Below, piece after piece: positions 10,231-59,868 of a stretch of DNA of 64,000 bases (position 1 is the first letter of the stretch; the number at the start of each line of letters is the position of its first letter). The DNA is taken from sequence record LR756502.1. The stretch is one strand, 5' to 3'. Position numbers and translations under genes: made by a program. The notes below the pieces were generated by a model. It did not search any database. It was not told the DNA's origin and saw nothing but the letters and a program-made list of their open reading frames with translations.

Positions 10231-10791
10231 TTATTTTGACTTTTTATCAGTGATATTTTTGATATAGTCCTTCATATCTTTCTCTTGTTTGCTAATCTTA
10301 TCATTTAGAGACTTCTCAGCTGCTGATGTGTCAGTAATTATTTTAGAAATTGTATCATTTGTTAATGATATTCTCTTATTAATGTCTGATATTTTTAACT
10401 GAAGTGATGACTTTTGGCTCGCATCAGTTGATGATGATAAATCTTGATTAAAATCATCTAGTTTTATTTTATCATCAACATTATTCTTTTTAAGCTTTTC
10501 TAGTCTTCTTTTTAGATCAGAAACATTTAGATATTCTACCAAAAATGGATTTCTATCTATCTTTGGTGATACTTCAGGTCCTAGTATTTCCTTAACCTTA
10601 TTAGACAACTCCTTGTCATCTTGTATCTTTATATAGGCTTGTGATATTAGATTCTTTTTGGCCTTAAACTCCTCTATTTGTGACATTAGAGTGTTTAGCT
10701 TCTCTTTAGACATTTTTAGATCAGGAGCATCAGATACTTCTGGTGTGAATAAATCTTCGTTGAATGACGAATATCCTTTTAGGTATTTCAT
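10231..10791 (-). CDS. Hypothetical coiled-coil protein with capsid-targeting-like N-terminus
   Basis: Begins MKYLKGYSSFNE. Confidence 0.6.
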   Translation of the reverse strand: MKYLKGYSSFNEDLFTPEVSDAPDLKMSKEKLNTLMSQIEEFKAKKNLISQAYIKIQDDKELSNKVKEILGPEVSPKIDRNPFLVEYLNVSDLKRRLEKLKKNNVDDKIKLDDFNQDLSSSTDASQKSSLQLKISDINKRISLTNDTISKIITDTSAAEKSLNDKISKQEKDMKDYIKNITDKKSK

Positions 10792-13181
10792 TTCTTTGGT
10801 TCATTTAACTTTGTCTTATATGCATCTTTATTCTTATTAAATAAAGCTTTAAGATCATCTGGTAGGACAAATAGTTTATCCTCTTTATTCACAACCGCAT
10901 ACACCTTAGATATCCTTGTGAATTTTACAGCCTCTGGTTTTGAGTTAGCCTTGTCATTTTTATATTCCTCTAAGTTTAGAGATTTTATTTCCATCTCAGT
11001 TCCCTGTTTTATTGGAAATTTCCTATTAGGAATTCTAGCATAGTTTAATGGGTAGATAACATCATCTTTGTCTCTATCTAACTCAATAAAGTTTGGCAAT
11101 GTTCCCTTTTCCACCTTTATCACATTCTTTGATATGTTCTTGAATGGTAAAAATGTTTCTGAGTATTTAACATATACGTAATCAGCATCAGAATCTATTA
11201 CTGATAGATAGTATTGCTTATCCTCTGTTTTTATTGAGTAAATAGCTCCTATGATTTTAGGATCAATTTCTCTTGTATCCTTAAAAGAGTATTTCTTAAC
11301 CTCTTTAGTTTTTGCTGCAACTTTCCCATTAACCGTAGTATCATTCCCACCCTTTCCAGTATATCCTAGCTTATCTGATTGGACATCCACATCAAAGTAT
11401 TCTTGTATAAATTTAGATTGTGCTCCATTTTTATAAAGTTTACTACCATCCAACATAGAGTTTATAAATGTTAATAGGGCTTTTCCTCCACCTTGTTTCT
11501 TATTTTCTCCAGATACGTTAGCTCTTGTATCGGCCTTTCCAACTTTAACAACTGTATCTTGATTAAATAAAACCTGATATTTAGAATCCTTTACTATATC
11601 AAGAACTGCATTTTCCCACCTGTTGAATAGTGCCTTATTTCTCCATGCCCCACCTGTATTCTCAGTTGGTGCTTGACCTTCTCCTACCCAATCATACTCA
11701 CCTCTTGTTCTATTTGAAATTTTACCACCACTTCTACCAGAAGGTATTATCTCTGATGTGTGTAGTTTATATGCTCTATTGAATATTTTAACTATTTCTA
11801 CTATAGGATCAATTCCATCAATTACTATTCTAGTACTATCTTTTGTTAGCTTATTAATTTCCTCATCCAGTGATTTTTTCTCAACGTCTGTTATTATCCA
11901 TCTCTTCATGAAATCTGGTTGGAATATTTTCATCCAATTGGTTTTAAGATCCGATCCCATGTCTGTTTTTTTAGACTTTGGATCCTCTGTATCCTCTGTA
12001 TTAGAAACTTCCGGATCTACAACTTCTGTATCCGCTTCATTTATTGAAATAAATTTAGCATAATTGTATAATTCAGCAAATTTTTCATTTTTAGTCTCCT
12101 CCTTTGAAATTATTGCCTTCATACTTGTGTTGAATTTAGCAATTTCTGACTTCATACTATCATCTACTCCAGTAAAGTCACCAGCCTCTTTTGTCTTGGT
12201 TATATTATATAGCCCGATCAACTTAGCACCGATGTTTTCAGGCTTGGTTAGTAATTCAACTAAACTCTCATTAACAGACTTTCTTTTGATATAATCATAT
12301 ATCTTTAATATTGGTGATTTATTTTGCTCATTACCAATTAGATTATAAAATTCTTCCTTTCTTCTATTCTCATCCTCTGTGAAAGTAAGGTATTGTTTCA
12401 TATAGTCATATAACGGCTTGATTGCCTTAAGTAGATTTGGGTCAATCGCTGATAATTGTTCATTAATAGATTGACTAAATTCATTTGAATAAGACTCAAG
12501 ATTGCTTACTGGTAGAGTTTTCTTACCTTGAATAGGTTCCTTTACCTGTACTTCTTTAGCCACAACTGCTTTAGCTGGCACTTCTTTAGCTACTGGTGCA
12601 GAGCTCTTTTTTATTTTATCATACCCATATAATATATTATATGATGATGTAAAATTCTCTATCATTTTTGGTAGAAGAGATGATGAATCTGATATAGGCT
12701 GAGTAGTGACATCTCCTATTGATTCTAAAAACTCATTTAACTTAGCTAATAGTTCTTTTTTATCCTCCTCGCTCTCTGGTTGTACTTTTAGAATACTAAT
12801 TTCCTCTATTGTATTTTTGGCTACCTTTATAACTTCACTTTTTTCATCTCCTTTATCAACTGAATCCTTTAGTTTTCCTAATAAAGCTGATATTTTAATC
12901 ATATCAATCTTTTTTAGTACATCTTTACTTAATTCAGCTCCTTTTATTTTAGCGTCTGCTACCAAAGAGTCAAAAGACTCCTTCAATTTATCAATAACCG
13001 AGTCCATTTTGAATAGATTTACCCCTATCCCAGCCTTTCTTATGACAGAGTTTATAAGCCTTCCTAGCAAGGAATCTCCCCAGTTTATATCATTGGCCAT
13101 TGGGCCACTATCGGCCTCTTCTTTTATCAATGAATACTTGTTGTTTCTGATGAATTCTTCCCTTTGTTTTAGATATCTCAT
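10788..13181 (-). CDS. Putative internal head/ejected protein
   Basis: Begins MRYLKQREEF; internal SINE, SVNE, SINE sites resemble prohead-protease sites; late promoter upstream. Confidence 0.55.
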   Translation of the reverse strand: MRYLKQREEFIRNNKYSLIKEEADSGPMANDINWGDSLLGRLINSVIRKAGIGVNLFKMDSVIDKLKESFDSLVADAKIKGAELSKDVLKKIDMIKISALLGKLKDSVDKGDEKSEVIKVAKNTIEEISILKVQPESEEDKKELLAKLNEFLESIGDVTTQPISDSSSLLPKMIENFTSSYNILYGYDKIKKSSAPVAKEVPAKAVVAKEVQVKEPIQGKKTLPVSNLESYSNEFSQSINEQLSAIDPNLLKAIKPLYDYMKQYLTFTEDENRRKEEFYNLIGNEQNKSPILKIYDYIKRKSVNESLVELLTKPENIGAKLIGLYNITKTKEAGDFTGVDDSMKSEIAKFNTSMKAIISKEETKNEKFAELYNYAKFISINEADTEVVDPEVSNTEDTEDPKSKKTDMGSDLKTNWMKIFQPDFMKRWIITDVEKKSLDEEINKLTKDSTRIVIDGIDPIVEIVKIFNRAYKLHTSEIIPSGRSGGKISNRTRGEYDWVGEGQAPTENTGGAWRNKALFNRWENAVLDIVKDSKYQVLFNQDTVVKVGKADTRANVSGENKKQGGGKALLTFINSMLDGSKLYKNGAQSKFIQEYFDVDVQSDKLGYTGKGGNDTTVNGKVAAKTKEVKKYSFKDTREIDPKIIGAIYSIKTEDKQYYLSVIDSDADYVYVKYSETFLPFKNISKNVIKVEKGTLPNFIELDRDKDDVIYPLNYARIPNRKFPIKQGTEMEIKSLNLEEYKNDKANSKPEAVKFTRISKVYAVVNKEDKLFVLPDDLKALFNKNKDAYKTKLNEPKK

Positions 13182-13236
13182 AGAGGTATATATTTTGTTT
13201 ATTATAGACTATATATAAAAATTATATACCCAAAAA

Positions 13237-13268: not shown

Positions 13269-13316
13269 TATAGTTGAATAAGTGATAATAATTAGAATTA
13301 AATAATTACTATATAA

Positions 13317-16524: not shown

Positions 16525-18663
16525 ATGGCGGTTAAACAAAAACAAGAAATCATCAGACAGATGGTCTTTACAACAAAATTAGTTGATGAGGCCACTGAAA
16601 AGATTAATGATGGTATTGTTGTAAAGAGATATCAGAATCCTTGGTTGAAGAGTGAAGTTGGTCTTAAAAGAGCAGGTGTTTCATTTAAAATGACAACTGA
16701 TGAGCAGCAAGAATATGTAAAATGTGCACTTGATATACACTACTTCACTGAAAAGTATTGTCAAACAAAAACAGAAGATGGTAGTGTTGATAATATACTT
16801 CTGAGAGATTATCAGAAAGAAGTTCTTGATAATTTTATCAGCAATAGATTTAATATATTGATGGCTAGTAGGCAGGTTGGTAAGACAATAATGTCCTCCG
16901 TATTTATATTACATACTATTCTATTTAGTAATGATAAGAATATAATGATAGTAGCGAATAAGGGAGATACCGCAATTGAGATTGTTGATAAGATAAAGGC
17001 CATCTACTCACTATTGCCATTTTTTCTAAAACCAGGTATAAAGTTATGGAACCAAAAATCATTAACATTTGATAATGGTTGTAGAATAAAAACATCCGCT
17101 CGTACAAAGACACCGGCTATTGGTTTTACTATTGACCTTTTATTCCTAGATGAGTTTGCTCACATACCATCTAATATTATTGAGCCATATTATACCGCTG
17201 CATTTCCGGTTACATCAGCTGTTCAGAATTCAAAGATAATTATAACATCAACACCAAATGGTATGAATCTATTTCATAGACTTTTGAGTAATGCTGAGAG
17301 ACCATCCGGTGATCCTCAAAAGAATAACTATAAGGCGATGAGAGTATATTGGTACCAAGTTCCTGGTAGATTCGTTACATATCTGAGACTAAACCCACAT
17401 AAGTTATATGACTATGGTGTTACTAAGGAGGATATCTTTACTTTAATTAATGATACTTGGGGGTCTAAGACAACAGTAGAGATGAAGTTTATATTAGATT
17501 TACAGAAAGATGTTATCTATGTTTATAATAATGAGTTTTGTTCTGATGAGGCAATTAAATCAATGACATTTACTGATAAAGATGGTAACGAGGTTCCTAT
17601 TATGGCTATTGCTGAACTAACAACATGGAAAGAAGAAGCTATAAAGGATATTGGTGGTGAAGATGCATTTAACCAAGAGTATGGACTTAGATTTATTAAC
17701 TCAAGTAAGTCACTTTTAAATGAGAACTTGATAGATGATCTACTTAAACATAAGAGAAATTATATACATGAAAATATACAAGAGTTTGATAGGAAGATAA
17801 GATTTAGTTATGAGGATCTTAAATGGATTGATGATGATGAGGTATTTATGCCTATTAATAGAAAGGAAACAAAGGTAATATTGTCTGTCGATATATCAGA
17901 AGGGCTTGGACAGGATTATTCTATAATTAATATATTTAAGATATCTCCAAAGCCAATAGATCTAATAGATGCTCAGAAGATGTCATATAAGAGCATAGTT
18001 GACTTCTTTCGACTAGAGCAAATAGGTATTTTTAGAAATAACTTTGTTTCTGTTAAGCAACTTTCTGAGTTACTATATATGATTGTCTTTGAGTATTTCT
18101 ACTACGAGAATGTTAAGGTCGTTCTCGAGTTAAATAATTATGGTAATACACTGTTAGCTGAAATGCCACACGTTTTTGATGGTAATAATAACTATGGATC
18201 TTCTATATTCTTCAGATATAAACATAGAGCCGACTCACTTGATGAAAAGGTTGGACTAAAGGTTGGTGAGAATAAGAATCTTATGGTAAAAGACTACCAG
18301 GAGTTAATGCAGAACAAAGGATTTGTTATAACAAACGAGGATAATATTAGAGAAATAACAACATTTGTTAAACACGTAACAACATCAGGTAACATTAGAT
18401 ATGCTGCTGATAATGGTCATGATGATACAGTTATGACTGTTGTTAATACCACAAGTATATTTGCTAAGAGTGATTTCAGGGAAATTGTTGAAGATTATGC
18501 TAATAAAATGGTTGATAAATCATTTATGACATATGTAAATGAATGTTTAAAAACAATGGAGTATGTTGAGGGTGTTGATTATAGTCAAGTATTGAAGATA
18601 AGGAGGCAACAGATGAACAGGTATAAAGGAAATTCTAATAATAAAAATTGGTTTGATAGATAG
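16525..18663 (+). CDS. gp17: Terminase large subunit
   Basis: LRDYQ, ASRQVGKT (Walker A), LFLDEFAH (Walker B), TSTPNG, FNQEY, VDISEG, HDDTVM. Confidence 0.95.
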   Translation: MAVKQKQEIIRQMVFTTKLVDEATEKINDGIVVKRYQNPWLKSEVGLKRAGVSFKMTTDEQQEYVKCALDIHYFTEKYCQTKTEDGSVDNILLRDYQKEVLDNFISNRFNILMASRQVGKTIMSSVFILHTILFSNDKNIMIVANKGDTAIEIVDKIKAIYSLLPFFLKPGIKLWNQKSLTFDNGCRIKTSARTKTPAIGFTIDLLFLDEFAHIPSNIIEPYYTAAFPVTSAVQNSKIIITSTPNGMNLFHRLLSNAERPSGDPQKNNYKAMRVYWYQVPGRFVTYLRLNPHKLYDYGVTKEDIFTLINDTWGSKTTVEMKFILDLQKDVIYVYNNEFCSDEAIKSMTFTDKDGNEVPIMAIAELTTWKEEAIKDIGGEDAFNQEYGLRFINSSKSLLNENLIDDLLKHKRNYIHENIQEFDRKIRFSYEDLKWIDDDEVFMPINRKETKVILSVDISEGLGQDYSIINIFKISPKPIDLIDAQKMSYKSIVDFFRLEQIGIFRNNFVSVKQLSELLYMIVFEYFYYENVKVVLELNNYGNTLLAEMPHVFDGNNNYGSSIFFRYKHRADSLDEKVGLKVGENKNLMVKDYQELMQNKGFVITNEDNIREITTFVKHVTTSGNIRYAADNGHDDTVMTVVNTTSIFAKSDFREIVEDYANKMVDKSFMTYVNECLKTMEYVEGVDYSQVLKIRRQQMNRYKGNSNNKNWFDR

Positions 18664-18689: not shown

Positions 18690-19055
18690 ATGATAACTAA
18701 GTTCAGCTTATTCTTGGAAAGTATTGGTGATAAGACCGTTTATGATCAAGAAACACGTTCAATGACAGGTGCTTATAAGGTAATAAGTAATGATGGGGTT
18801 ACTACATCTATTGAAAACTATCAGGAGATTCCTGAGCTTAAAGGGAGTAGACCACTTATTTATATGGATGATAAATTATCTGGTATAAGAATAAAGAAAG
18901 TAGTCAATATACCATCCGACCAAATTAAAATTGGAGCAGACCTTGGTGATGGATATTTTGATATATCAATACCATATTTCATATTTAAAAAATATGACTC
19001 AGATCTAGAAATTAAAAAGCTAAGTGATCGATACCGAGTAAAGGATAAGGTTTAA
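18690..19055 (+). CDS. Hypothetical protein with capsid-targeting-like N-terminus
   Basis: MITKFSLFLE; late promoter AATATATA immediately upstream. Confidence 0.55.
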   Translation: MITKFSLFLESIGDKTVYDQETRSMTGAYKVISNDGVTTSIENYQEIPELKGSRPLIYMDDKLSGIRIKKVVNIPSDQIKIGADLGDGYFDISIPYFIFKKYDSDLEIKKLSDRYRVKDKV

Positions 19056-19333
19056 TTAATCTCCATTGTTGCTAACAATCCAGCAGAAGTTAATTTATCC
19101 TTCATATCAGATATTGTTTCCAAATCACCATATTTCACATCACATTGACCATTGAAGTGAATGATATGAGCACATTGTGATGCTTGTTCCTGTTCGTGAT
19201 TACATATCTTCATAAGACAACTGATTACATGGTCGAAACTATTGTAGTCATCGTTGTGAAGCATTAGTTTGTACGGATTTGATAAAATCTCTTCCACTTG
19301 TGAATCAGTTTTTGTTTTTGTAATAGTTGCCAT
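19052..19333 (-). CDS. clpS: ClpS N-degron adaptor (Bacteroidota-like)
   Basis: LMLHNDDYNSFDHVI...QASQCAHIIHFNGQCDVKYG...GLLA. Confidence 0.9.
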   Translation of the reverse strand: MATITKTKTDSQVEEILSNPYKLMLHNDDYNSFDHVISCLMKICNHEQEQASQCAHIIHFNGQCDVKYGDLETISDMKDKLTSAGLLATMEIN

Positions 19334-22264: not shown

Positions 22265-22298
22265 CATTTCCATGAATTTTGCTTTTAATATATAAAAT

Positions 22299-22742
22299 AT
22301 GAGATATCTAAAAACATTTGAAAGTTTTGATTACGATACAATAGATGCTAATGAGGATGAGTATCTATATGTTCAAGAATCGCAGATTCCAAACTCCGGT
22401 AGTGGTTTATTTACAGCGATAGATATAGGTAAGGATGAGATAGTGTCAAAATTTATTGGTGAGGTTATATCAGAGGAAGAGTCACAAATAAGAGTTGATA
22501 ATGATGATGATCAATATTTTATGAGTCTCCCGTCAGGTGAAATGTTTGATTGTAAAAGAACAGATTGTTTCGCCAAATATGCAAATGATGCTGAAGGACT
22601 TCCCACAAAATTCAAAAATAATACATTTATAGGAATGGATGATGATGATAATGTTGTTTTAATAGCCAAGAGAGATATTAAAGCTGGTGATGAGATATTT
22701 ACTGGATATGGTAAAGAATATTGGGGTAAACACGGTATATAA
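22299..22742 (+). CDS. SET-domain methyltransferase
   Basis: GSGLFT, KYANDA, AKRDIKAGDEIFTGYG..YW; N-terminus MRYLKTFESF. Confidence 0.88.
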   Translation: MRYLKTFESFDYDTIDANEDEYLYVQESQIPNSGSGLFTAIDIGKDEIVSKFIGEVISEEESQIRVDNDDDQYFMSLPSGEMFDCKRTDCFAKYANDAEGLPTKFKNNTFIGMDDDDNVVLIAKRDIKAGDEIFTGYGKEYWGKHGI

Positions 22743-22752: not shown

Positions 22753-23847
22753 TTAAAGATTATCTATAAACTTATAAAGCTTTTTAACATATTCTCTTCT
22801 CTTATATTCTGGATTTGTCATAGTATATACAACAAATGAAAAGTAATTCATTTTCTCAATTAATAACTCCTTAGAGATATTACCTCCAACATACCTGAAC
22901 TCAACATAATTATTATCAAGTTTTGTAATATTAAATCCGAAGTTTTTGTGACCAAGCTCTTTAATCTTCCCTGTAAGAAAACTGTTTAATGTTTCTTCTG
23001 TTTCTTTTAGATTGTTTAAATCAATTGACCTCTTCAACTTTTCTATTACTTTACTATCTAGTGATTTTATTGCTGGTATTAAAGATCCACAGAAGTGACT
23101 ATTCATTCTCCATGTCATATCTTTGAATGTTAGAGGCGGTGCATCACCCTCGTTAAAATCATTTAACATAAGTAATCCCTTTATTGGGTTCCATTCAGCG
23201 TTATTATCATTTACTCCAATGTTTATATGTAGTCCAGTTTTTTCTGTAAATTTCCAATAGCTTTGCTTTTCTAAATCAGAATAAAAGTCGTTGATCATCT
23301 CTGTTCCCTCGGAAAGACCTACTAGATATGTTTTTGGCTTTATTTCTATACCTCTGTCCAATGTAACATCTTCAACTAAATCTATCTTTTTGGACCATTT
23401 CTTTATAAAGTTTGGTAGGTATTTTTTTGTTTGTTTTGTCATGTATAGTAGATCTGATTCAGCTATTTGACTCATTACGGCTGACTTAATAAACTTTACA
23501 ATTTCCCTTTCCCTATTACTTTCGTAATTATCTAGGTTGAATATTTTGACCATGTCTTCTTTTATAGTACCATCCTCATTCGCATCTACCAGTGATTGTA
23601 TAATGCTTTTAACTAGAGTTTTTTCAGATCTAGTCCTTATATCCATTTCGTGTTTTGTGCTACTTATTATATCATCAATATCATCTTCATCTTCCAGAAT
23701 ACTAAAGTCCATTTTAATGTTTGACTTATCATCCGTCTCTATCTCAAACTCAAATGATACTGTGAAATATTTATCCATGTTCTGGATAAATGATATATCC
23801 TTTGGATTTACTTCTTCAAAAAGAGAAAATTTAATAATGTGTTTCAT
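22753..23847 (-). CDS. Putative amidoligase (COOH-NH2 ligase type 2)
   Basis: SFEFEIE, GIEIKP, TGLHINIG, YVEFRYVGG; N-terminus MKHIIKFSLFEE. Confidence 0.75.
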   Translation of the reverse strand: MKHIIKFSLFEEVNPKDISFIQNMDKYFTVSFEFEIETDDKSNIKMDFSILEDEDDIDDIISSTKHEMDIRTRSEKTLVKSIIQSLVDANEDGTIKEDMVKIFNLDNYESNREREIVKFIKSAVMSQIAESDLLYMTKQTKKYLPNFIKKWSKKIDLVEDVTLDRGIEIKPKTYLVGLSEGTEMINDFYSDLEKQSYWKFTEKTGLHINIGVNDNNAEWNPIKGLLMLNDFNEGDAPPLTFKDMTWRMNSHFCGSLIPAIKSLDSKVIEKLKRSIDLNNLKETEETLNSFLTGKIKELGHKNFGFNITKLDNNYVEFRYVGGNISKELLIEKMNYFSFVVYTMTNPEYKRREYVKKLYKFIDNL

Positions 23848-23906
23848 GAATATTATATATTAAAAATTAATATATAATAAAATAATACAAAAATTTACCA
23901 GTGAAA

Positions 23907-24398
23907 ATGAAAGAAACTCGTATAATGAACTTTGGAACATTTGTTAATGAATCCTATGATTTTGAAGATTTTACAATGAATGATATGGAGTTTGTTAAAG
24001 AACTTTGGAATGATGGAATGACTGATACTGTTCAAATAGCAATTGAGTGTGATTTGGATAAACCAACAGTTGTGCAAATATTAGATACTCTTAAAAGACG
24101 AGGTGATATTAAAGATACTGATGGTGTATTGGAGTCTGAACAATTTGATGAACATGATGAGGAACATTCTGGGTGCGGTTGTCATATTTGTAACTGTGTT
24201 GGAGAATGTGAATGTGAATGTTGTTGTTCAGATGTTTCGGATATTAAGAGTTGTAAATGGTGTTATAAAGAATTTGAGCCAGAAAACAATTCTCAATGCT
24301 GTTGTAGTGAATGTGATTCAAAATATAATAACTATTTATCAAATGATAATTCAAAGACTCCTTGGAGTGATGATAAGTACAATTATCGAGAAAGATAA
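23907..24398 (+). CDS. Acidic protein with Cys-rich metal-binding C-terminal half
   Basis: CGCHICNCVGECECECCC...CKWC...CCCSEC; NFGTFVNE near N-terminus. Confidence 0.6.
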   Translation: MKETRIMNFGTFVNESYDFEDFTMNDMEFVKELWNDGMTDTVQIAIECDLDKPTVVQILDTLKRRGDIKDTDGVLESEQFDEHDEEHSGCGCHICNCVGECECECCCSDVSDIKSCKWCYKEFEPENNSQCCCSECDSKYNNYLSNDNSKTPWSDDKYNYRER

Positions 24399-26796: not shown

Positions 26797-27231
26797 TCAA
26801 AACGAGGTTATTCTATATGCAACCTTGACGAGTTTAATACCACGATTCACACTACTGGATCCTATAAAACTTTGTGAGGTGGGAAAATTATAAAATGGTA
26901 CTCTTAAATTGTTTTTTTCTTCACCATCAAAAATAACACCAATATATTCAAAATTCATATTATCACTTTGTTTTATATAGGATATCAATCTATCAATTGC
27001 ATCAGATACATCAGAGTACTTAAATACCTTTAGATTATCTGATATAGGAATTAAATGAGGTGATATCTCACCATTGGCTATAAAAATACTTCTTGATAAT
27101 TTACCAGAAGCTCCCAATCTTATATAGAAACCATCATCTTCTAAATCTAAACAAATGTCATTTAAGTCATCGTTGATTGATGATTCAAAATCATCGGATT
27201 CAAATAAATTATATTTAATTAAGTGATTCAT
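26797..27231 (-). CDS. Hypothetical protein with capsid-targeting-like N-terminus
   Basis: MNHLIKYNLFES. Confidence 0.55.
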   Translation of the reverse strand: MNHLIKYNLFESDDFESSINDDLNDICLDLEDDGFYIRLGASGKLSRSIFIANGEISPHLIPISDNLKVFKYSDVSDAIDRLISYIKQSDNMNFEYIGVIFDGEEKNNLRVPFYNFPTSQSFIGSSSVNRGIKLVKVAYRITSF

Positions 27232-27275
27232 GATGTATATATTTTTATTTAATATTAAAATTTAATATATACCTT

Positions 27276-27608
27276 ATGAAAAATTTAAAAAGTTGGAAAC
27301 TATTCACCGAAAGCGTTGATACAGACATTGATATATTGGATCCTAAATTTACTGATGGTAATGCTGAAGAATTCTTAACACGACTTGGTGTGGAGGTTAC
27401 AAAATCGACGGGTGAGTATAAACCAGGTGTGCCTGAGGAATCTAATGTTGGTATTAGGCCATATCCAAATAATGTCTCCTATGGATTTAAATTGCAAAAA
27501 GACTGTGATAATTTTGAGGAGTATGTGAAGGGTAAGAACATTAAATATAAGACTTTTCCTTCAGAGGGTGCTAGATATCCATACCATATTATAGTTTATA
27601 AGAACTAA
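27276..27608 (+). CDS. Hypothetical protein with capsid-targeting-like N-terminus
   Basis: MKNLKSWKLFTE. Confidence 0.55.
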   Translation: MKNLKSWKLFTESVDTDIDILDPKFTDGNAEEFLTRLGVEVTKSTGEYKPGVPEESNVGIRPYPNNVSYGFKLQKDCDNFEEYVKGKNIKYKTFPSEGARYPYHIIVYKN

Positions 27609-30805: not shown

Positions 30806-31009
30806 ATGAAACACGTAAATAAATTTTCTGAGTTTATAACAGAAGAACATAGACTTGGATACCTTGATAAAGAAGATAAAGAGCAGGTTCTTGAATTTGA
30901 ACCAAAAGAAGGAGAGTCCTTTGAAGAGGCTAAGAATAGATTACTCGGAGACTTTAAGTTTTTTTGGTCTCACTATATAAGACCAGAAGTTGAAGAAACA
31001 AAGAATTAA
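30806..31009 (+). CDS. Small protein with capsid-targeting-like N-terminus
   Basis: MKHVNKFSEFITEE, close to T4 MKTYQEFIAE. Confidence 0.6.
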   Translation: MKHVNKFSEFITEEHRLGYLDKEDKEQVLEFEPKEGESFEEAKNRLLGDFKFFWSHYIRPEVEETKN

Positions 31010-31127: not shown

Positions 31128-31493
31128 ATGTACTTAAATAATAAAGATTTGTATGTAGAAGTGATAGTATCAAAAGCACAAGGGAAACTTACTAGAAGCG
31201 CTGAAAAAATGTTGGAGCTACTTGCTAAAAAGACAATAAAGAAAATGAGATATTGGTCTAATGATGATAAACTTGATTGTTACCAAAGTGGTCTTTTAGA
31301 TATGTTTCAAAACTGGTATAACTTTAATGAATATAAGAGTGTTAATGCATTTGCATACTTTACTGAAGTTTTTAAGAGAGGAATCGCTAAGGGATATAAC
31401 GAACTTTACAAGAAGAAAGGCGATAACGAACATTTAATAAAACTAATATCTATTGAGGGTTCAAATGATGGAATGGGATTACACTCATTATAA
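31128..31493 (+). CDS. gp55: Late-transcription sigma factor, T4 gp55-like
   Basis: YLNNKDLY, NFN, NAFAYFTEV. Confidence 0.85.
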   Translation: MYLNNKDLYVEVIVSKAQGKLTRSAEKMLELLAKKTIKKMRYWSNDDKLDCYQSGLLDMFQNWYNFNEYKSVNAFAYFTEVFKRGIAKGYNELYKKKGDNEHLIKLISIEGSNDGMGLHSL

Positions 31494-31649: not shown

Positions 31650-31967
31650 TTACTTCTTAGTTTTAGTATTTAACTTTTCCAACATATCTGGAGTAGCCAT
31701 ATTCATGTCTATTTCCTCACTTGGTTCCTTAACACCATGTAGTGTTCCTTTACCATCTACTGTTGATGCGCTAAGATTATATGTTCCAAGCTCTACATCT
31801 TGGTTTTGATTAGCTATGAACTCCATTTTATCTTCAGCTTCTTCTTGATTCTTCGCTCTAACTGTAATATCACAAGTAAATGTGTAGTAATTGTTCTCAT
31901 CTATATCAGATCCCCATTTTTCTTTAGGGTTTTGCTCATATAATTCATTGAACTTTTTGATTTTCAT
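31650..31967 (-). CDS. Hypothetical protein with capsid-targeting-like N-terminus
   Basis: MKIKKFNELYE. Confidence 0.55.
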   Translation of the reverse strand: MKIKKFNELYEQNPKEKWGSDIDENNYYTFTCDITVRAKNQEEAEDKMEFIANQNQDVELGTYNLSASTVDGKGTLHGVKEPSEEIDMNMATPDMLEKLNTKTKK

Positions 31968-35218: not shown

Positions 35219-35231
35219 TAATATATAAGTT

Positions 35232-36002: not shown

Positions 36003-36006
36003 GTAT

Positions 36007-39271: not shown

Positions 39272-41371
39272 ATGAAACCAGTTTTAATCGTAGAAAACGC
39301 AACAAACTCCTTGATAAGAGAAGGTGTTGCGGGCAAGAATGATTATATCATGGGTGGTATTTTTACTGAATTCGGTGTTAAAAACCGTAATGAAAGAATT
39401 TATACTGCTGATAAATTTCTTCCTTGTTTGGAAGAAATGAATGATAGAATGAATTCTTTTGGTACAGTTTATGGTGAATTCGATCATCCAGATGTATTTG
39501 ATACATCATTATCGAGAGCATCTCACATAATCACAAAAGCTGAATATGTAAAAGAGTCAAATAGAGTAGAGGGTGAAATTAGATTACTAAGTACTTATTG
39601 GGGAAAAGAAGCTAAGGCATTAGTCAATGACGGATGTCCTGTTTTCGTTTCCTCTAGAGCTGCTGGTATTACTGAGTCCGATGGTACAGTTACATTGAAG
39701 AAGTTATTTACTTATGATATTGTTGCTGATCCAGGATTTGCATCTGCTAAAATGAGTGTAAAAGTACTTAATGAGTCATTGGCTTATGGAGCACCTAGCA
39801 CAAACACAAACTTCAGGATATATGAAATGTCCGATGAGTCAAAAATTAATGAACTATTCAATATGAACAAGAATGAGTTTGTCACAAAAGAGCAATTAAC
39901 AGATTACTCTAAGTATTTAGTTAAAGAACTATTAGATACTAAGAAAGAAGTTAAAAACGCTTTAACTAAGGGTAACGTAGCACCTAAAAAGTTAGAAAAT
40001 CTTCTAGAATACTATGAAGAATTACAAAAGAGTAACACACAAATGGTTAAGTATCTTGACTATTTATCTGAAAAAATTCAAGTTGTTGTTGATGAAAATT
40101 CTTCATTAAAGAAAACAGCTGATAAATTAATTAAGCATAATGATTATTTAGCTGAGAATTTAGAGAAATCTATTAACTACTCTGAATATCTTGCTGAAAG
40201 TCTTGATAAAAATATTGACTATTCTGAGTATATCGCTGAAAATTTAGATAAGAACATTTCTTATGGTGAGTATTTAGCAGAAAATTTAGATAAGAACATT
40301 TCTTATGCTGAGTATATCGCTGAAAACTTAGATAAGAATATTCAGTATTCTGAATATATCGCTGAGAACTTAGATAGTAATATAGCTTACTCAGAATATA
40401 TTGCTGAAAGTCTTGATAAGAACATTTCTTATTCCGAATACTTAGCAGAACACTTAGATAATTCTATTGCTTACTCAGAATATTTAGCTGAGAATGTTGA
40501 AGGAAATATCGCTTATTCTGAATATATCGCAGAACACTTAGATGATAATATCGCTTATTCTGAATATATCGCTGAAAACTTAGATAAGAGCATTTCTTAC
40601 CAAGGTTTAATAGTTGAAAAACTAAATGGTGGTAAACTAAACGAAAATAATGGAGAGATTTTACCATCTCTTAATGTTGCTGGATTCGAAAGCATTGAAG
40701 AAACACCTGTATCAAATGAGGTTGTTGCTGATGTTGTTGAAGAAGTTGCTACTGAACCTACAATGGAAAATGTTGTTGAGGAGTCTACAGACGATTCTGC
40801 ATCTGAATCTACTGAAGAAGAAGAAGTACATGAAAATATTAGTGGTGATTCTGATACAGAATTATCATTATCTATTGATAAATTAATTGAAGAAGCTAAA
40901 AAACGTAAAGTTTCTGAATCAACTGACTTGAACTTCTTAAAGTTCTTGAACAAGTCACAAGTTGATAGCTTTTACGCTCTAAGTCCAGAGGAACAGGAAA
41001 CTGTTAAACTTCATATAAACGAAAGAAGTTATTTTACATCTAAGGACGTATTAGGGTTAATAAGTGAATCATTATCTACTAAGAACGAAACTCTTGAAGA
41101 AAGAGTTATCAGATTAATGCCGGAAAACATTAAGGCAATCTGGAATCAGTTAAATGAATCTTCTAAAAAGTCTATCTTATCACAAGCTAGATTATATCCA
41201 GAAGATGTATTAATGACTGAAGGTCAAGTTGAGCATTTCTGGACAACTAGAAATCTTAAAAAGAATGAGTCTGTTACTAAAAAGTTAGTATCTCATGAAA
41301 GCCTTATCCAAGAGGATAAACTTTCTGATAAAGATGTACAAGCTATAATGGAGAGATTCAAAAACATTTAA
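39272..41371 (+). CDS. gp21: Prohead protease fused to scaffold
   Basis: GIFTEFGVKNRNERIY, GEFDHP, VSSRAAG, TYDIVADPGF; long coiled-coil/repeat C-terminus. Confidence 0.92.
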   Translation: MKPVLIVENATNSLIREGVAGKNDYIMGGIFTEFGVKNRNERIYTADKFLPCLEEMNDRMNSFGTVYGEFDHPDVFDTSLSRASHIITKAEYVKESNRVEGEIRLLSTYWGKEAKALVNDGCPVFVSSRAAGITESDGTVTLKKLFTYDIVADPGFASAKMSVKVLNESLAYGAPSTNTNFRIYEMSDESKINELFNMNKNEFVTKEQLTDYSKYLVKELLDTKKEVKNALTKGNVAPKKLENLLEYYEELQKSNTQMVKYLDYLSEKIQVVVDENSSLKKTADKLIKHNDYLAENLEKSINYSEYLAESLDKNIDYSEYIAENLDKNISYGEYLAENLDKNISYAEYIAENLDKNIQYSEYIAENLDSNIAYSEYIAESLDKNISYSEYLAEHLDNSIAYSEYLAENVEGNIAYSEYIAEHLDDNIAYSEYIAENLDKSISYQGLIVEKLNGGKLNENNGEILPSLNVAGFESIEETPVSNEVVADVVEEVATEPTMENVVEESTDDSASESTEEEEVHENISGDSDTELSLSIDKLIEEAKKRKVSESTDLNFLKFLNKSQVDSFYALSPEEQETVKLHINERSYFTSKDVLGLISESLSTKNETLEERVIRLMPENIKAIWNQLNESSKKSILSQARLYPEDVLMTEGQVEHFWTTRNLKKNESVTKKLVSHESLIQEDKLSDKDVQAIMERFKNI
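40136..40597 (+). repeat. 11 x 42-bp coding tandem repeat (YSEY[IL]AENLDKNI)
   Basis: Units counted from the translation; in frame. Confidence 0.92.
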
Positions 41372-41451: not shown

Positions 41452-43167
41452 ATGTCACACATTAGAATAGACAAACAAAAAGCAGTTAAGAAGTGGGGAC
41501 CTGTTCTTGAGAACATGGGAGTTACTGGCGACAGAATTGATTGGATGGCAGAATATGCTGAATTTCACCAAATCAATGAGAACGCATATGTAAACGCTTC
41601 TAACGTAGCAGGTATGGGTCAAGTTATTGCAGCTGGTCCATCAATATTACCAGGTGCTACAATTGGTACAAATTGGTCATCAACAGGAATCGCAGGTTCA
41701 GGTGATGTTGGTCAAAACCTTTTACCAGTAGCAATGAAAATCGCAGCTCAAACAATCGGTTTGGATTTAGTAGCTGTTAAGCCTTCTCCAGGACCAAAAA
41801 TTGACTTACTTTATATTGATTTTCAATATGATGATACTCAATTGGGTGCTAATGATGAGAGACCACAGGTTTTCAAATTAAACATGACAGAATTGTCAAC
41901 AGTTCAAATCGCTCTTAGAGCTTTTATGTCTGCTAACGGTATCGTTGAGTCTCAAGGTGGGATGAATGATAGAATCTGGGCTAACATAAACGGATCTTCA
42001 ACAATCTCTACTTTTACTACAACTGATCAAACAGCAAATAGTAAAGTTGGTACAGTTGAATTCTTAGGTTTCTCTCGTATCGATGGTTACCCAATGTTCA
42101 GAGCTTACAGACAGTTTAACACAGCTCACACAGCAGTTACAACTGGTTCTACTCTTTGGTCATTTGACGCAACTAGAAACACATTTAACCCAACACAATC
42201 TATGATTACTCAAGTAACAGCAATTGGTACAGTTTCTGTTAGTGGTGTAACTCTTGAGTTGGTATCAGCTCTTGAAGATCATATCCCGGGATTCTCTGCA
42301 AATTGGAACTCTAGTTCAACTGGATTTGCTGGTAACTATCCAATGGACAGATTACAAGATGACAGCACATATGCTGGTGTTATCGGACCAAAAATTTCTT
42401 CTAAATCTATTGCAGTTGGTACTATTGAAGTAACTTCAGCTCTTAGAAGATCAGAAATTGAAGATATCAAAGCTAACACAGGTATGGACATCGTTCAAAA
42501 GATGGAGTCAATCCTTGTTAATGAGTTATCTCAAACAATTTCTAAACAAATTGTAGCTAAGATTTTCGAAATGGGTGATCTAAACAGAACAACAGCTCCT
42601 TTATTTACTGGAACTGCTTTAGCTGGTGACCCAACTGGAAAAACTATCTTCGACTTAAACACTGTATATGCAGCAGTTGCAACAGGACCAGGAGGAGAAA
42701 CTACACACGCGATTCAACGTAAGTTGATCACTAAGATAGCTCACGCTTCTAACTACATTGCGACTGAAGGTCGTGTTGGTCCAGCTCAATACTTGATCAC
42801 AAATGGAGGTCTTGCAGCAGCTTTACAAGATATCGCTGGTTACACAGTTAACCCTATGAAATCTAAATTAAACTCACAAGGTCAATTATACCCTGTAGGT
42901 ACAATTGGAGATATCTCTATCTATGTTGATCCTTATATGAAGTATAATGACAACAGAATTGTTGTAGGAAGAAAGAACAACGCTGACCAACCTGGTATTA
43001 TTTTCGTACCTTATTTGATGGCTCAGTCTATCTCTGTAATCTCTGAAGCTACATTCGCACCACGTATGTTGTTAAGATCAAGATATGCAGTTGCTGAAGT
43101 TGGTTGGTTCCCACAAAAACAATTTATGACTATTAAAGTTGTAGATGCTAATGGTTACTTAAACTAA
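41452..43167 (+). CDS. gp23: Major capsid protein
   Basis: KKWGPVLE, HQINE cleavage-like site, DLVAVKPSPGP, IYVDPY, PGIIFVPY, FAPRMLLRSRYAV. Confidence 0.95.
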   Translation: MSHIRIDKQKAVKKWGPVLENMGVTGDRIDWMAEYAEFHQINENAYVNASNVAGMGQVIAAGPSILPGATIGTNWSSTGIAGSGDVGQNLLPVAMKIAAQTIGLDLVAVKPSPGPKIDLLYIDFQYDDTQLGANDERPQVFKLNMTELSTVQIALRAFMSANGIVESQGGMNDRIWANINGSSTISTFTTTDQTANSKVGTVEFLGFSRIDGYPMFRAYRQFNTAHTAVTTGSTLWSFDATRNTFNPTQSMITQVTAIGTVSVSGVTLELVSALEDHIPGFSANWNSSSTGFAGNYPMDRLQDDSTYAGVIGPKISSKSIAVGTIEVTSALRRSEIEDIKANTGMDIVQKMESILVNELSQTISKQIVAKIFEMGDLNRTTAPLFTGTALAGDPTGKTIFDLNTVYAAVATGPGGETTHAIQRKLITKIAHASNYIATEGRVGPAQYLITNGGLAAALQDIAGYTVNPMKSKLNSQGQLYPVGTIGDISIYVDPYMKYNDNRIVVGRKNNADQPGIIFVPYLMAQSISVISEATFAPRMLLRSRYAVAEVGWFPQKQFMTIKVVDANGYLN

Positions 43168-43252: not shown

Positions 43253-43942
43253 ATGAAAAAGTATATCCTAGTTGCTGATGATCCTAATTGTACTGATTTA
43301 TATCTTCAATATTTTGATGATCTAATAGGAGTATATCAATTTGTTTGTGACGATCTAACATATGATGACTTTGATATCGAAGATTTTATGGCTGGTGGTT
43401 CTACTGGATATAGCTGCGTTGAAGAAAGAATTCAAGAACATGAAGTTAGTTATAACCTATTTAAAAATGGTGAATCTGATTGCACTTTCATACTAAGTGG
43501 GGATGATGGATCTTGGGAAGAATTTACCAATATTTGTTTTGGTATTAAGGAGAATAAGATTATAAAATTTGATAAATTTAATGAGGGTAAGAAGGATAAA
43601 TTTCCAAATCTTAAAAAGCTAGAAATAGATGGATTTGTTGTGTATATTGGTAAGGATGCTATTTCAAATGATCATCTAACATTCAATATCGCCTATCCGG
43701 AAGATATTTGGATGCATGCTAAGGGTGTTCCTGGTAGTCATGTTGTTATAAGAGTAAGAGAAAATCTACCAACAAAAGAAACAATAAAAAAAGTGGCACA
43801 ACTAGCATTAAAAAATAGTAAGTCTAAGTCAGATAGAGCTTCAGTTGTCTATTGTCAAAGAAAATTTGTTAAAAAAGAAAAGGGTATGAATCCTGGTGAA
43901 GTTAGGGTTGATTATACCAATTCTGAGGAAATTGCTATTTGA
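43253..43942 (+). CDS. Acidic N-domain plus NFACT-R (DUF814, RqcH/FbpA C-terminal) domain
   Basis: YIGKDAISNDHLT...DIWMHAKGVPGSHVVI...LA...SK...PGEV. Confidence 0.82.
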   Translation: MKKYILVADDPNCTDLYLQYFDDLIGVYQFVCDDLTYDDFDIEDFMAGGSTGYSCVEERIQEHEVSYNLFKNGESDCTFILSGDDGSWEEFTNICFGIKENKIIKFDKFNEGKKDKFPNLKKLEIDGFVVYIGKDAISNDHLTFNIAYPEDIWMHAKGVPGSHVVIRVRENLPTKETIKKVAQLALKNSKSKSDRASVVYCQRKFVKKEKGMNPGEVRVDYTNSEEIAI

Positions 43943-57696: not shown

Positions 57697-57739
57697 TAAA
57701 CTTTTATCTAAATTCTTTCTAAATTACATAATAAATCCG

Positions 57740-57747
57740 TATATTTG
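57740..57747 (+). promoter_or_regulatory. Bacteroidota -7 element
   Basis: TATATTTG 17 nt upstream of ATG. Confidence 0.55.
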
Positions 57748-57764
57748 TATAAATAGACATAAAT

Positions 57765-58949
57765 ATGCGAATTAGACGAAAATTTCTTCAATTAACAAGT
57801 TGGACTTATCCTTATGGAACTGAGTATACACTTGAGAGTTACCTACCAAAAGGATTTCAAAGAGATGAAAATGAGAACTATTATATTGTAGTTGGTAATA
57901 ATCCAAGTACAATGTTTACTTGTCATTTAGATACAGCTTGTTCATATCAGGAAAAAGTAACACATGTACCCAGTGGTAATTTTATTAGAACTAATGGTAA
58001 GACAATTTTAGGATCTGATGATAAGGCTGGTATGACAGTTATGTTATATATGATTGAGAAAAAGGTTCCTGGTATATACTACTTCTTTACTGGTGAGGAA
58101 GTTGGATGTATTGGATCTGGTGATTTGGCAGATCAGTGGTTTGAGTTAAAAATGTTTAATGATATAACTAAAATTGTTTCTTTTGATAGAAGGGGTACTG
58201 GTTCTGTAATTACTCACCAATTATATGGTAGATGTTGTTCAAATGAGTTCGCTGAAGAACTATCAAAGAGATTAAACGATACTGATGAGGGCATTAATAT
58301 GTCTCCGGATAATACTGGTATAATGACAGATTCTGCTAAGTTTGTTGATATGGTTCCGGAGTGTACTAACATTTCAGTTGGATATTATAAAGAACATACT
58401 GTTGATGAGTGTCAAGATATTGAATTTTTGCAGAGGTTGTGTAAGGCTGTTGTTAAAATTGACTGGGAAACACTTCCGGTTAAGAGAGATCCGACCGAAG
58501 AAGAAGAGGAAAGTTATATAGATACTTATGCAAATTGGAGTAATGGAAAATATAAGTACTCAATAGATGAAGATGGATATGAGTTCTTGGAGGAAAACTA
58601 TACATATGTTCAGTATTCTACACCAACTGGTAAGGATGTAAAGAAAATGCTTATTTCAAAGGATAGAGTTTCTGAGGAAAAGAAATATATATACAACTGG
58701 GTATTCTCAACCGGGTTATATAGTGATATGACTGGTATGGATTGGAATGGTCATTCATTGTATATTGCAAATGCGAAAGGAAATCTTGAATTTGTTGGTA
58801 ATAGAGTTGAGCTTATGGATTATGTCCCTGAGTTAAAGACTGTTCCAACAAGATGTCTTTCTGATAAACCTAGGAAGCACGTTAAGGATATAGACACTGA
58901 AGTTACTGACATGAGTGATGATAGGTTTATGGAAGAGTATATGTATTAA
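57765..58949 (+). CDS. Second M20/M28-family metallopeptidase
   Basis: CHLDTA, LGSDDKAG, GEEVGCIGS, SFDRRG, TNISVGYYKEHT. Confidence 0.82.
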   Translation: MRIRRKFLQLTSWTYPYGTEYTLESYLPKGFQRDENENYYIVVGNNPSTMFTCHLDTACSYQEKVTHVPSGNFIRTNGKTILGSDDKAGMTVMLYMIEKKVPGIYYFFTGEEVGCIGSGDLADQWFELKMFNDITKIVSFDRRGTGSVITHQLYGRCCSNEFAEELSKRLNDTDEGINMSPDNTGIMTDSAKFVDMVPECTNISVGYYKEHTVDECQDIEFLQRLCKAVVKIDWETLPVKRDPTEEEEESYIDTYANWSNGKYKYSIDEDGYEFLEENYTYVQYSTPTGKDVKKMLISKDRVSEEKKYIYNWVFSTGLYSDMTGMDWNGHSLYIANAKGNLEFVGNRVELMDYVPELKTVPTRCLSDKPRKHVKDIDTEVTDMSDDRFMEEYMY

Positions 58950-58959
58950 ACCAAAAACT

Positions 58960-59868
58960 TTAATGTAATTTAGAACCTACGAAATCTTCGTAGGTTTCTT
59001 TTTTTACAACGTGAATGCAATCATCGATGGAGAATGAAAGCGAGAATCGATCAATGTCGTCATGAATAAAAACACCATCAGACCCATCTCCAAAGGAATT
59101 ATATGTACCAATAACAACTTTAATTAAAGAAGATCTCAGTGGTTGTACATCCGCGCGATCCAGCTTTAATATCTTGAGACTCTCACTGGTCACTAATACT
59201 ACTTTATCCTCATCTTCAAGACTATTTCTCTCATCTTTAATTTCATTTAATATTTGGAAGTTAACCTTGTCACTTTTTAGTGACTTAGCAATGGACGACA
59301 TATCCATATTTGTAATTACTTGATTAGTTGTTGTCTCTATTATATTCTTACTAGTATATTCATCCTTGTAGTCTTCTATTAGATCACATGTTGTGAAGTC
59401 AGCATCACCACTTACTGTCTTATATTTATGATGTAGGTCACCGAAAACCTTATCTATTGCATTCTCGTATGTTTTTCTAACTTCTTCCTCTATCTCAGTT
59501 GATATGTATAATAACCAATCTGGTGCATCATTAGAAGCCTTTTCTAAAACCTTTTCGGGCTCAGCAAAATCATTATATGTTTCTTTTTTAACTATATGGA
59601 AAGCATGTTCTATTGTATAAACAGTATCGTTAGTCGAAGTTCCTAATACATAACAATTATCATTTTGATCAAACCATCTTTCTAATTTAAATTGATATGT
59701 ATCATATCCACCGCTGAAATATGTAGCTAAAACTTCATCACCCTCCATAAGAGAATTTCTCTCATCATCTAATTTAGTAAGCACAGAAAGGTCAACCTCA
59801 TCATTTACGCACTTGAAGTCGTGTGATTGAACATATAGTTCATTGAACTGTTTCCACTTTTTGATCAT
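58960..59868 (-). CDS. Tandem-duplicated-domain protein with capsid-targeting-like N-terminus
   Basis: MIKKWKQFNE; DERNSL and H[IV]VKKETY.DF each occur twice. Confidence 0.6.
   Translation of the reverse strand: MIKKWKQFNELYVQSHDFKCVNDEVDLSVLTKLDDERNSLMEGDEVLATYFSGGYDTYQFKLERWFDQNDNCYVLGTSTNDTVYTIEHAFHIVKKETYNDFAEPEKVLEKASNDAPDWLLYISTEIEEEVRKTYENAIDKVFGDLHHKYKTVSGDADFTTCDLIEDYKDEYTSKNIIETTTNQVITNMDMSSIAKSLKSDKVNFQILNEIKDERNSLEDEDKVVLVTSESLKILKLDRADVQPLRSSLIKVVIGTYNSFGDGSDGVFIHDDIDRFSLSFSIDDCIHVVKKETYEDFVGSKLH
58972..59005 (+). terminator. Intrinsic terminator overlapping the 3' end of the opposite-strand gene
   Basis: AACCTACGAA-ATC-TTCGTAGGTT followed by a U-run. Confidence 0.75.

Follow-up and report, generated by a model that had tools for sequence, protein, structure and literature searches.

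An N-terminal tag resembling the T4 capsid-targeting sequence on about 190 proteins of a 642-kb phage

In phage T4 the first 10 residues of the internal protein IPIII suffice for incorporation into the head; within this capsid-targeting sequence (CTS) residues 4 and 7 serve targeting and residues 8 and 10 processing, targeting is possible without processing, and the prohead protease gp21 cleaves after L/I-x-E (PMC9026906). A T4 head, built for a 169-kb genome, holds about 1000 internal-protein molecules, which touch the DNA via lysines (PMC3012670), and it can be loaded with 20–200 fusion proteins (PMC9026906). The hypervariable internal-protein loci of T-even phages encode defence-countering proteins of various kinds that have nothing but the CTS in common (PMC3012670), and in phiKZ-like giant phages a diverged gp21 homolog cuts after Glu in longer propeptides with S/A-x-E (PMC9026906). 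Here we describe a short N-terminal sequence, called the tag below, that is shared by many unrelated proteins encoded in LR756502.1, the 642,428-bp genome of an uncultured phage of the Mahaphage clade with predicted replication in Bacteroidetes, which is among the four largest complete phage genomes of Al-Shayeb et al. 2020 (PMC7162821). The stretch from which the analysis started, the window, comprises 64,000 nucleotides (positions 186001–250000, plus strand, matched at 100% identity; G+C about 31%) and has no N runs and no tRNA genes; coordinates refer to it unless stated otherwise. We put at roughly 0.6 the probability that the tag is a greatly expanded variant of the T4 CTS, which would address a large, late-made cargo to the prohead core, with many of the leaders trimmed and the cargo passed on to the next host cell.

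The tag and the proteins that carry it

The motif was counted over the whole 642-kb genome, in its 956 open reading frames (ORFs) of at least 50 aa, with a 14-column position matrix that was built iteratively from the genome's own N-termini and anchored on Met1. The consensus is M1 K2 [H/Y]3 [L/I]4 K5 [K/T/S]6 [Y/F]7 [N/K/E]8 [E/I/S/L]9 F10 E11, with information content only in residues 1–12 and background level reached by residue 13. Of 150 tags, 138 have Y or F at position 7, whereas at position 10 there are 83 with F, 11 with Y and 7 with L; columns 8–20 are polar or acidic, with 5–35% hydrophobic residues per column and no hydrophobic run. When the matrix was trained on alternate genes and tested on the remaining ones, 18.6% of ORF N-termini reached the cut-off of 8 bits, compared with 0.5% of shadow ORFs, 0.4% of internal-Met windows and 0.6% of shuffled N-termini, the last being the comparison by which an initial annotation of the window had proposed to judge the motif. 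At 10 bits or more, 189 of the 956 ORFs are tagged; these have a median length of 165 aa, make up 19% of all coding residues and are scattered across nearly the whole genome, and four further ORFs have a strong tag at a downstream Met. With some 190 tagged proteins genome-wide, the initial annotation, which had put their number at about 19, was right about the motif and understated its extent about tenfold; it saw one tenth of the phenomenon.

The 18 coordinates that had been named as starts of tagged genes are all ATG codons of ORFs, and the tag stands on 16 of the 18, at 13–27 bits, the two that fell short being 49811 (6.1 bits) and 23907 (−8.5 bits at Met1). These ORFs, one further doubtful case and an internal relic of the tag are listed here; AATATATA is an upstream element that is treated below together with the promoters.

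10231..10791, minus strand: tagged ORF, 186 aa, MKYLKGYSSFNE, 24.5 bits; ortholog in LR745206 tagged; operon-internal, its ATG overlapping the stop of the upstream gene
10788..13181, minus strand: tagged ORF, 797 aa, MRYLKQREEFIR, 21.8 bits; AATATATA ends 5 nt before the ATG; without a match in Pfam or PHROG
18690..19055, plus strand: tagged ORF, 121 aa, short register MITKFSLFLES with an L-F-L-E-S site, 13.3 bits
21030..21584, plus strand: tagged ORF, 184 aa, MKHIRQFESYRN, 20.7 bits; tagged orthologs in L014 (LR745206) and in contig L143
21650..22264, plus strand: tagged ORF, 204 aa, MKYIKTYENH, 25.0 bits; highly conserved alpha/beta protein
22299..22742, plus strand: tagged SET-domain methyltransferase, 147 aa, MRYLKTFESFDY, 24.1 bits; Pfam SET 2.3e-11 over residues 34–138
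22753..23847, minus strand: tagged ORF, 364 aa, MKHIIKFSLFEE with an L-F-E site, 26.4 bits; ortholog in LR745206 without the tag
23907..24398, plus strand: doubtful, no tag at Met1 (−8.5 bits), a loose MNFGTFVNES at Met7
26797..27231, minus strand: tagged ORF, 144 aa, MNHLIKYNLFES with an L-F-E site, 24.4 bits; AATATATA ends 4 nt before the ATG
27276..27608, plus strand: tagged ORF, 110 aa, MKNLKSWKLFTES, 21.3 bits; AATATATA ends 4 nt before the ATG
30806..31009, plus strand: tagged ORF, 67 aa, MKHVNKFSEFITE followed by E, a full T4-like F-x-x-F-I-x-E, 25.3 bits; operon-internal, without a promoter element of its own
31650..31967, minus strand: tagged ORF, 105 aa, MKIKKFNELYEQ, register one residue shorter, 18.5 bits
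35232..36002, plus strand: tagged ORF, 256 aa, MKYLSKYNMFIEQ, 22.9 bits
36007..36480, plus strand: tagged ORF, 157 aa, MKHLRKFEELNY, 26.9 bits; directly upstream of the portal gene
43559..43585, plus strand: tag relic IIKFDKFNE inside the NFACT-R ORF 43253–43942, without Met, −0.3 bits
45351..45869, plus strand: tagged ORF, 172 aa, MKLKKYKDIFEK, 16.2 bits; tagged ortholog in LR745206
49461..49811, minus strand: weak or doubtful tag, MAKKKIVSFNDFNND, 6.1 bits
50529..51620, minus strand: tagged ORF, 363 aa, MIMLSKFYEFKE, 16.3 bits; weak nucleotidyltransferase palm similarity (Pfam MTPAP-like, E = 0.007, below the curated cut-off)
57765..58949, plus strand: doubtful tag, 10.8 bits
58960..59868, minus strand: tagged ORF, 302 aa, MIKKWKQFNELY, short register, 15.8 bits

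Beyond the tag the carriers are unrelated, as had been supposed: without their first 20 residues, 164 of the 189 have no BLAST-detectable relative in the genome. Where tagged and untagged paralogs exist they differ by an N-terminal extension, as in a NUDIX group and in ORF 35232, whose untagged paralog in the same genome (g0765) lacks the first ~25 residues; in a few small paralog groups every member is tagged. Synonymous codons at conserved tag positions vary much as they do genome-wide (His3 is CAC 0.54 and CAT 0.46, Lys5 is AAA 0.56 and AAG 0.44, and Leu4 is spread over TTA, CTA, CTT and TTG) and substitutions stay within amino-acid classes (K/R, L/I/V, F/Y/W), which together exclude a DNA or RNA motif. 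The tag is thus portable, an addition to the proteins that is under selection as amino-acid sequence. Tags on unrelated bodies are also more alike within a locus or phage (identity 0.51) than between them (0.41), a difference reached in 0 of 300 permutations, and this fits co-evolution with a genome-specific receptor.

The 204-aa protein at 21650 offers a view of one carrier across many genomes, with more than 1200 homologs, the 120 listed being about 70% identical; all 14 full-length sequences that were read, from 15 fetched, are tagged. In its AlphaFold2 model (mean predicted local distance difference test score, pLDDT, 66) residues 1–11 have a pLDDT below 50 and the fold runs from residue 14. 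No PDB fold matched it at E < 0.001, and an assignment as nicotinamidase/isochorismatase-like, suggested by a 'LIIVDVQ' strand, was dropped, there being neither a Pfam match nor a PDB fold match. The SET ortholog in freshwater contigs is tagged and adjoins this 204-aa gene.

The internal copy that had been reported in the NFACT-R protein (NFACT-R_1 domain, 1.7e-14) is borne out as a relic, low as its score is: in LR745206, a 634-kb relative, the ortholog starts at the relic position as MIKKYKLFKEGKKDKFPNLKK, behind a TATATATA element. That gene encodes a tagged protein of 129 aa and lies just after the capsid gene (L014 37508–37897). In the present genome an N-terminal extension of ~100 residues is fused in frame, and the old tag is now internal and Met-less.

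Likeness to the T4 leader and its genomic setting

A matrix trained on the huge phage alone was applied to 97% of the T4 genome, where the 266 ORFs score −5.9 bits on average (standard deviation 6.3). The three internal proteins ipI (15.0 bits), ipIII (14.3) and ipII (14.3) are all in the top four. The highest score, 16.6 bits, belongs to gp61.1 (NC_000866 18966–19130, minus strand), a 54-aa hypothetical protein that starts MKTFKEFIKE and is CTS-like with an I-K-E site; the match may be due to chance, or gp61.1 may be a head-targeted protein that has been overlooked. In the best register, Y4/F4 and F7 of T4 fall on [YF]7 and F10 of the tag, and I8-x-E10 of T4 falls on tag positions 11–13, so that the tag reads as the T4 CTS plus three residues after M-K. 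In both systems a leader of about 10 residues with an M-K start stands at the extreme N-terminus of otherwise unrelated proteins, and carries two aromatic or hydrophobic residues spaced i, i+3, and both phages have a gp21-family protease and gp20- and gp23-type genes. The [LIV]-x-E that follows in T4 is enriched after the tag, though not universal, and a promoter element suggests that the tagged genes, like those of T4, would be expressed late. The tag differs in three additional residues, [HY]-[LI]-K, that separate M-K from the first aromatic, in a degenerate Glu site that is canonical in about 40% of tags, in carriers that are mostly acidic, and in their number, ~190 compared with 3 in T4 (4 counting gp61.1). 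The likeness to the T4 CTS had been proposed at the outset, and the parts of it that can be judged from the genome came out as predicted, namely the head genes, the T4 ranking, the critical residues, the promoter and the unrelated carriers.

The cleavage-type site deserves separate treatment. In the 642-kb phage, [LIVM]9-F10-E11 occurs in 26% of tags compared with 2%, and [LIVM]-x-E with Glu at residues 11–15 in 39% of tags compared with 9% of untagged N-termini. We also scanned IMG/VR with a back-translated pattern for residues 1–10, which leaves tag positions 11–13 unconstrained; among the matches listed there (261 non-redundant tags), [LIVM]-x-E at positions 11–13 is present in 49% compared with 2% of untagged N-termini, and with Glu anywhere at residues 11–15 in 60% compared with 10%.

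The window also encodes the T4-type head genes that a CTS would call for: an S77 prohead protease with a scaffold-like extension, a T4-type portal and a capsid protein, listed here with two further genes; a tail sheath gene is present as well.

16525..18663, plus strand: T4-type large terminase (Terminase_6N 8.5e-19; phrog_5989 1.3e-50)
31128..31493, plus strand: gp55-like late sigma factor (phrog_234, late sigma transcription factor, 9.7e-6)
36545..38260, plus strand: T4 gp20-type portal (Pfam Portal_T4 1.3e-57; phrog_213)
39272..41371, plus strand: prohead protease of the T4 gp21 family, 699 residues (phrog_207, head maturation protease, 6e-28; Pfam Peptidase_S77 4.6e-4)
41452..43167, plus strand: T4 gp23-type major capsid protein (Pfam Gp23 3.7e-28), with I-N-E-N near residue 46

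The N-terminal third of the protease is the maturation protease, aligned with T4 gp21 at GELNHP/GEFDHP and VSSRGLG/VSSRAAG (the His and Ser motifs), and is followed by a scaffold-like C-terminal extension of ~470 residues; its closest annotated homologs are called 'prohead core scaffold and protease' in other jumbo phages. It is the presumed reader and cutter of the tag. Orthologs of the major capsid protein, aligned down to 28% identity (n=9), conserve [ILM]-x-E-N near residue 46, plausibly a maturation site of the same type as the tag site. Several neighbours are worth recording in their own right. A ClpS-like N-degron adaptor homolog (19052–19333, minus strand; phrog_27368, 2.8e-8) adjoins the terminase gene and is conserved beside it in syntenic freshwater contigs, with a Pfam ClpS match there, and a glutamine synthetase-like gene (32053–33150, minus strand) lies between the terminase and portal genes, where freshwater relatives keep it as well (Gln-synt_N/C). 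Two members of a four-member peptidase-like paralog family (phrog_4191; weak M28 similarity) are in the window, both on the plus strand: the copy at 43975–45351 is directly downstream of the capsid and NFACT-R genes and is conserved in LR745206, and the paralog at 57765–58949 is the marginally tagged ORF listed above. The window opens with a 1637-aa ORF (108–5021, plus strand).

Among octamers upstream of genes in this phage, AATATATA is the most enriched (200 genes, with 13 expected), and it stands ahead of the genes for portal, protease, capsid, terminase and sheath. Of the tagged genes 52% have it, compared with 13% of those without the tag (odds ratio 7, p = 3e-27). Most of the listed genes had been credited with a late promoter of their own, and 13 of the 18 do have AATATATA or TATATATA at most 60 nt upstream; for ORFs that score at least 6 bits the count within 60 nt is 14 of 19. 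In 75 of 98 tagged genes AATATATA ends 4–7 nt before the ATG (in the window, for example, at 22281–22298, 27258–27275, 35214–35231 and 35989–36006), compared with 18–26 nt upstream in structural genes. If AATATATA acts like the T4 late −10, this spacing would make the tagged mRNAs leaderless or nearly so. The gp55-like factor and the sharing of the element with structural genes support the view of AATATATA as a T4-style late promoter, from which late expression of the tagged genes would follow. At ORF 51620 AATATATA overlaps the ATG itself. Two divergent gene pairs, with intergenic stretches of 45–60 nt at 23848–23906 and 27232–27275, each hold two opposed copies of AATATATA as compact back-to-back putative late promoter units; both genes of the pair 27231/27276 are tagged, and in the pair 23847/23907 only 23847 clearly so. 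A second enriched upstream element, TAnnTTTG (TA..TTTG / TATATTTGTA), stands at 4% of tagged compared with 11% of untagged genes, window examples being upstream of 13387, 19881 and 57765. It resembles the Bacteroidetes housekeeping sigma-A −7 box and probably marks early host-polymerase promoters, which fits the predicted Bacteroidetes host. Upstream of the environmental tagged genes no common promoter motif emerged from the mixed set.

Compared with the T-even internal-protein loci, the present system is alike in that diverse, lineage-specific cargo is united only by its leader, that many of the genes have their own putative late promoter, and that tandem tagged arrays occur in environmental relatives (14 of 27 ORFs in contig L052, for example); it is one to two orders of magnitude larger and spread genome-wide, whereas the T-even genes occupy one or two loci. 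With the ejection and inner-body proteins of phiKZ, 201phi2-1 and SPN3US it has in common a giant head with dozens of proteins and a Glu-cutting gp21 homolog. Those phages, however, have longer propeptides with S/A-x-E, no common short tag and head genes not recognisably T4-like in sequence; the tag, a shared leader of 11–12 residues whose enriched site has L/I/V/M at P3, does not fit that type. A closer cultured parallel is the Sphingomonas jumbo phage PAU, whose portal is 27% identical to the portal here. Four of its head-region genes, gp142 and gp154 (both deposited as 'internal capsid protein') and the neighbours gp143 and gp153, start MK[ST][LI]xxLYExKLNE[AS], ending in an L-N-E site, and the scaffold gp152 has only the first nine leader residues, MKTLTQLYE, without that site (within PAU 85001–135000 the five genes with the shared leader are at 21051, 21521, 27151, which is the scaffold, 27994 and 28313). 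The consensus is another one, scoring less than 7 bits with our matrix, and there are ~5 carriers in the 50 kb sampled. The PAU leader has the look of a CTS particular to its lineage, and this cultured phage might serve as an experimental model. Bacterial Sec, Tat and lipoprotein signal peptides and the MreB-type helix resemble the tag in their N-terminal place and in a few basic residues near the start, but the tag has no AxA, lipobox or twin-arginine, is followed by acidic residues and is near-absent from cells; nor is there a hydrophobic core in the tag columns, and the carriers are poor in membrane segments.

Cargo and distribution

When 149 tagged proteins were compared with Pfam, ~11 matched and ~93% gave nothing, so the functional spectrum rests on ~11 proteins. 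The families are phage lysozyme, T4-type RNA ligase, NUDIX, SAM methyltransferase, SET, HNH, GNAT, DHH, PQ-loop and two DUF6576; replication or tail proteins are not among these matches. Membrane segments are predicted in 3% of tagged and 10% of untagged proteins. One copy of each tagged protein would add up to ~4.2 MDa, and if the T4 head is scaled to the 3.8x larger genome, it might accommodate on the order of ten copies of each. A tagged 2H-phosphoesterase (2'-5' RNA ligase superfamily) is encoded at positions 473785–474309 of the genome and again in an environmental tagged array (L113 3924–4463), its homologs in Maribacter phages being untagged; given that the fold includes cyclic-nucleotide-degrading anti-defence enzymes, it is a candidate for an injected counter-defence protein.

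The IMG/VR scan found at least 119 loci that match the pattern, and among the matches listed 321 of 1500 ORFs are tagged, with the consensus MKHIKLFEEF[IV]NE. Near these environmental tags lie genes of the portal (phrog_213) and terminase families known from this phage, and homologs of this phage's portal, protease, major capsid protein and sheath at 30–80% identity. Freshwater contigs syntenic with the window carry the large terminase gene, three tagged genes including SET, and clamp loader, gp15-like, glutamine synthetase-like and portal genes; they are more compact, which suggests that the window's extra tagged genes are insertions between core genes. By contrast with the viral data, a scan of 596 Gb of bacterial and archaeal genomes returned 118 matching places, 91 of them not at a tagged ORF, and at this near-chance level the tag is viral and not a host signal. 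A few multi-tag loci sit in metagenome-assembled genomes of assorted phyla, probably as mis-binned phage contigs, and host inference from the titles of such genomes was dropped.

Related Mahaphages carry the tag unevenly, on 9 of 52 ORFs in LR745206, on 6 of 55 in LR756501, on 2 of 54 in LR756504 and, in a 50-kb sample, on 1 of 49 in LR756500. Cultured phages were sampled over 50 kb each, and Maribacter phage Molly_1 has one weak match among 102 ORFs. A tblastn search with a 21-residue consensus gave nothing usable. In the literature we found no earlier report of the tag outside T-even phages; a jumbo-phage comparative review is silent on it, among the papers listed for 'capsid targeting sequence' none deals with huge or environmental phages, and the literal tag strings led to no paper.

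Readings of the tag and what it may mean

As an expanded T4 CTS, the tag would work in the following way. Tagged proteins would be produced late, alongside the head proteins, and the short amphipathic leader would dock them on the scaffolding core while the prohead assembles, chiefly through contacts of the two aromatics three residues apart. Once activated, the gp21-family prohead protease would cut many of the leaders after the nearby Glu and so free the cargo inside the shell, where it would stay with the DNA and enter the next host with it. Once delivered, the proteins might be at work ahead of all phage gene expression, on tasks such as host takeover or anti-defence. Scaffold binding, cleavage by the protease, residence in the virion and injection are all parts of this picture that we infer from the sequences.

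A number of observations weigh against it. About 60% of the tags in the 642-kb phage are without a canonical L/I/V/M-x-E at residues 11–15, and there is little room for a cleavable linker in the 204-aa protein because its fold starts ~3 residues past the tag. In 13 ortholog pairs the tag is no better conserved than the body (identity 0.49 for both); what is retained is the pattern and not each residue. The HNH nuclease, RNA ligase, lysozyme and PQ-loop membrane protein that are tagged have functions usually exercised inside the cell during infection. The tagged proteins are more acidic than the others (median net charge −3.3 compared with −1.5 per 100 aa), whereas T4 internal proteins contact DNA via lysines, and there is no precedent for ~190 different proteins, 19% of coding capacity, in a phage head. 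Finally, in 50-kb samples of three relatives with T4-type heads, the tag was found on 0 of 65 ORFs of Tenacibaculum phage PTm1, which has the nearest cultured portal, on 0 of 87 of Prevotella phage Lak-A1 and on a single ORF of LR756500, and no cultured phage with this exact tag turned up in the Molly_1, PTm1, Lak-A1 and PAU samples.

The main rival keeps the targeting and denies the injection: the tag would lead to the scaffolding core, but most carriers would be auxiliary scaffold or filler for a very large prohead, degraded by the protease or expelled before or during DNA packaging like T4 gp22, gp67 and gp68. The prohead of a 642-kb genome needs a very large core, for which the protease extension is the sole recognisable scaffold, the PAU scaffold protein bears the first nine residues of the leader shared there, and it is in keeping with such a role that the tagged proteins are acidic, like many scaffolding proteins, and that more than 90% of them lack a recognisable enzymatic domain. 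We nevertheless regard it as unlikely, given that 164 unrelated singletons of very different sizes are not what one expects of structural filler, that several carriers are enzymes (SET, NUDIX, GNAT, DHH, RNA ligase, lysozyme, methyltransferase), and that the extra tagged genes have been inserted between core genes in particular lineages, as is typical of accessory conflict genes and not of assembly parts. Somewhat less probable still is that an amphipathic helix sends late proteins elsewhere, whether to the inner membrane face of the host, as the N-terminal helix of E. coli MreB does, to a phage compartment or to an assembly site. K-x-[LI]-K-x-[FY]-x-x-F is indeed a short basic and aromatic amphipathic segment, and the existence of tagless related huge phages means that the tag is not obligatory for T4-type head assembly; yet the same matrix picks out the proven CTS-bearing proteins of T4, the acidic residues and the Glu-cleavage-type site after the tag would oppose binding to an anionic membrane, membrane segments are depleted among the carriers, and the essential absence of the tag from cellular genomes argues against a host localisation signal.

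The shared start might instead reflect translation or transcription of late, near-leaderless messages, as a nucleic-acid or nascent-peptide element that favours initiation and does not sort proteins. Shine-Dalgarno-led initiation is largely lacking in Bacteroidota, and the close spacing of AATATATA to the ATG in 75 of 98 tagged genes, with mRNAs that may be leaderless, would suit such an element, but synonymous variation is free at every conserved tag position and substitutions follow amino-acid class, the tags are equally good on the operon-internal, promoterless genes 10791, 30806 and 59868, and structural late genes have no tag, all of which makes it very improbable. Least credible of all is that the likeness stems from common descent in one paralogous family, from a recombination cassette of promoter and first codons, or from a composition rich in K, N, F, Y and E at 31% G+C. 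The genome is AT-rich, a few small paralog groups are wholly tagged, and the greater likeness of tags within one phage could also come from gene conversion; still, composition-matched controls stay below 1%, 164 of the 189 carriers are singletons beyond residue 20, conservation at the nucleotide level is lacking, and genes that have no promoter element keep the tag.

If the tag is indeed an expanded CTS, it is tempting to speculate further, though more tentatively, that this lineage pre-loads its heads with a 'first-strike proteome' of well over 100 different soluble proteins, encoded by a fifth of its genes and defined by one T4-derived tag, and that thousands of proteins are tagged in the same way in environmental T4-like phages. 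The tagged set includes enzyme types linked to conflict, among them SET and SAM methyltransferases, NUDIX, GNAT, DHH, 2H phosphoesterases, RNA ligase and lysozyme. Were the proposal true, an N-terminal motif search would find injected effectors, anti-defence enzymes included, directly from metagenomes, as a cheap marker that needs nothing but sequence, and alternative tags might serve for packaging proteins into engineered phage heads. It would also explain the role of many huge-phage genes without known function, as a large share of coding capacity given over to proteins co-delivered with the DNA, and the picture of host takeover by huge phages would change, with delivered proteins acting before transcription. 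The T4 CTS, known from a handful of coliphage proteins, would then be old and in wide use across the T4 superfamily.

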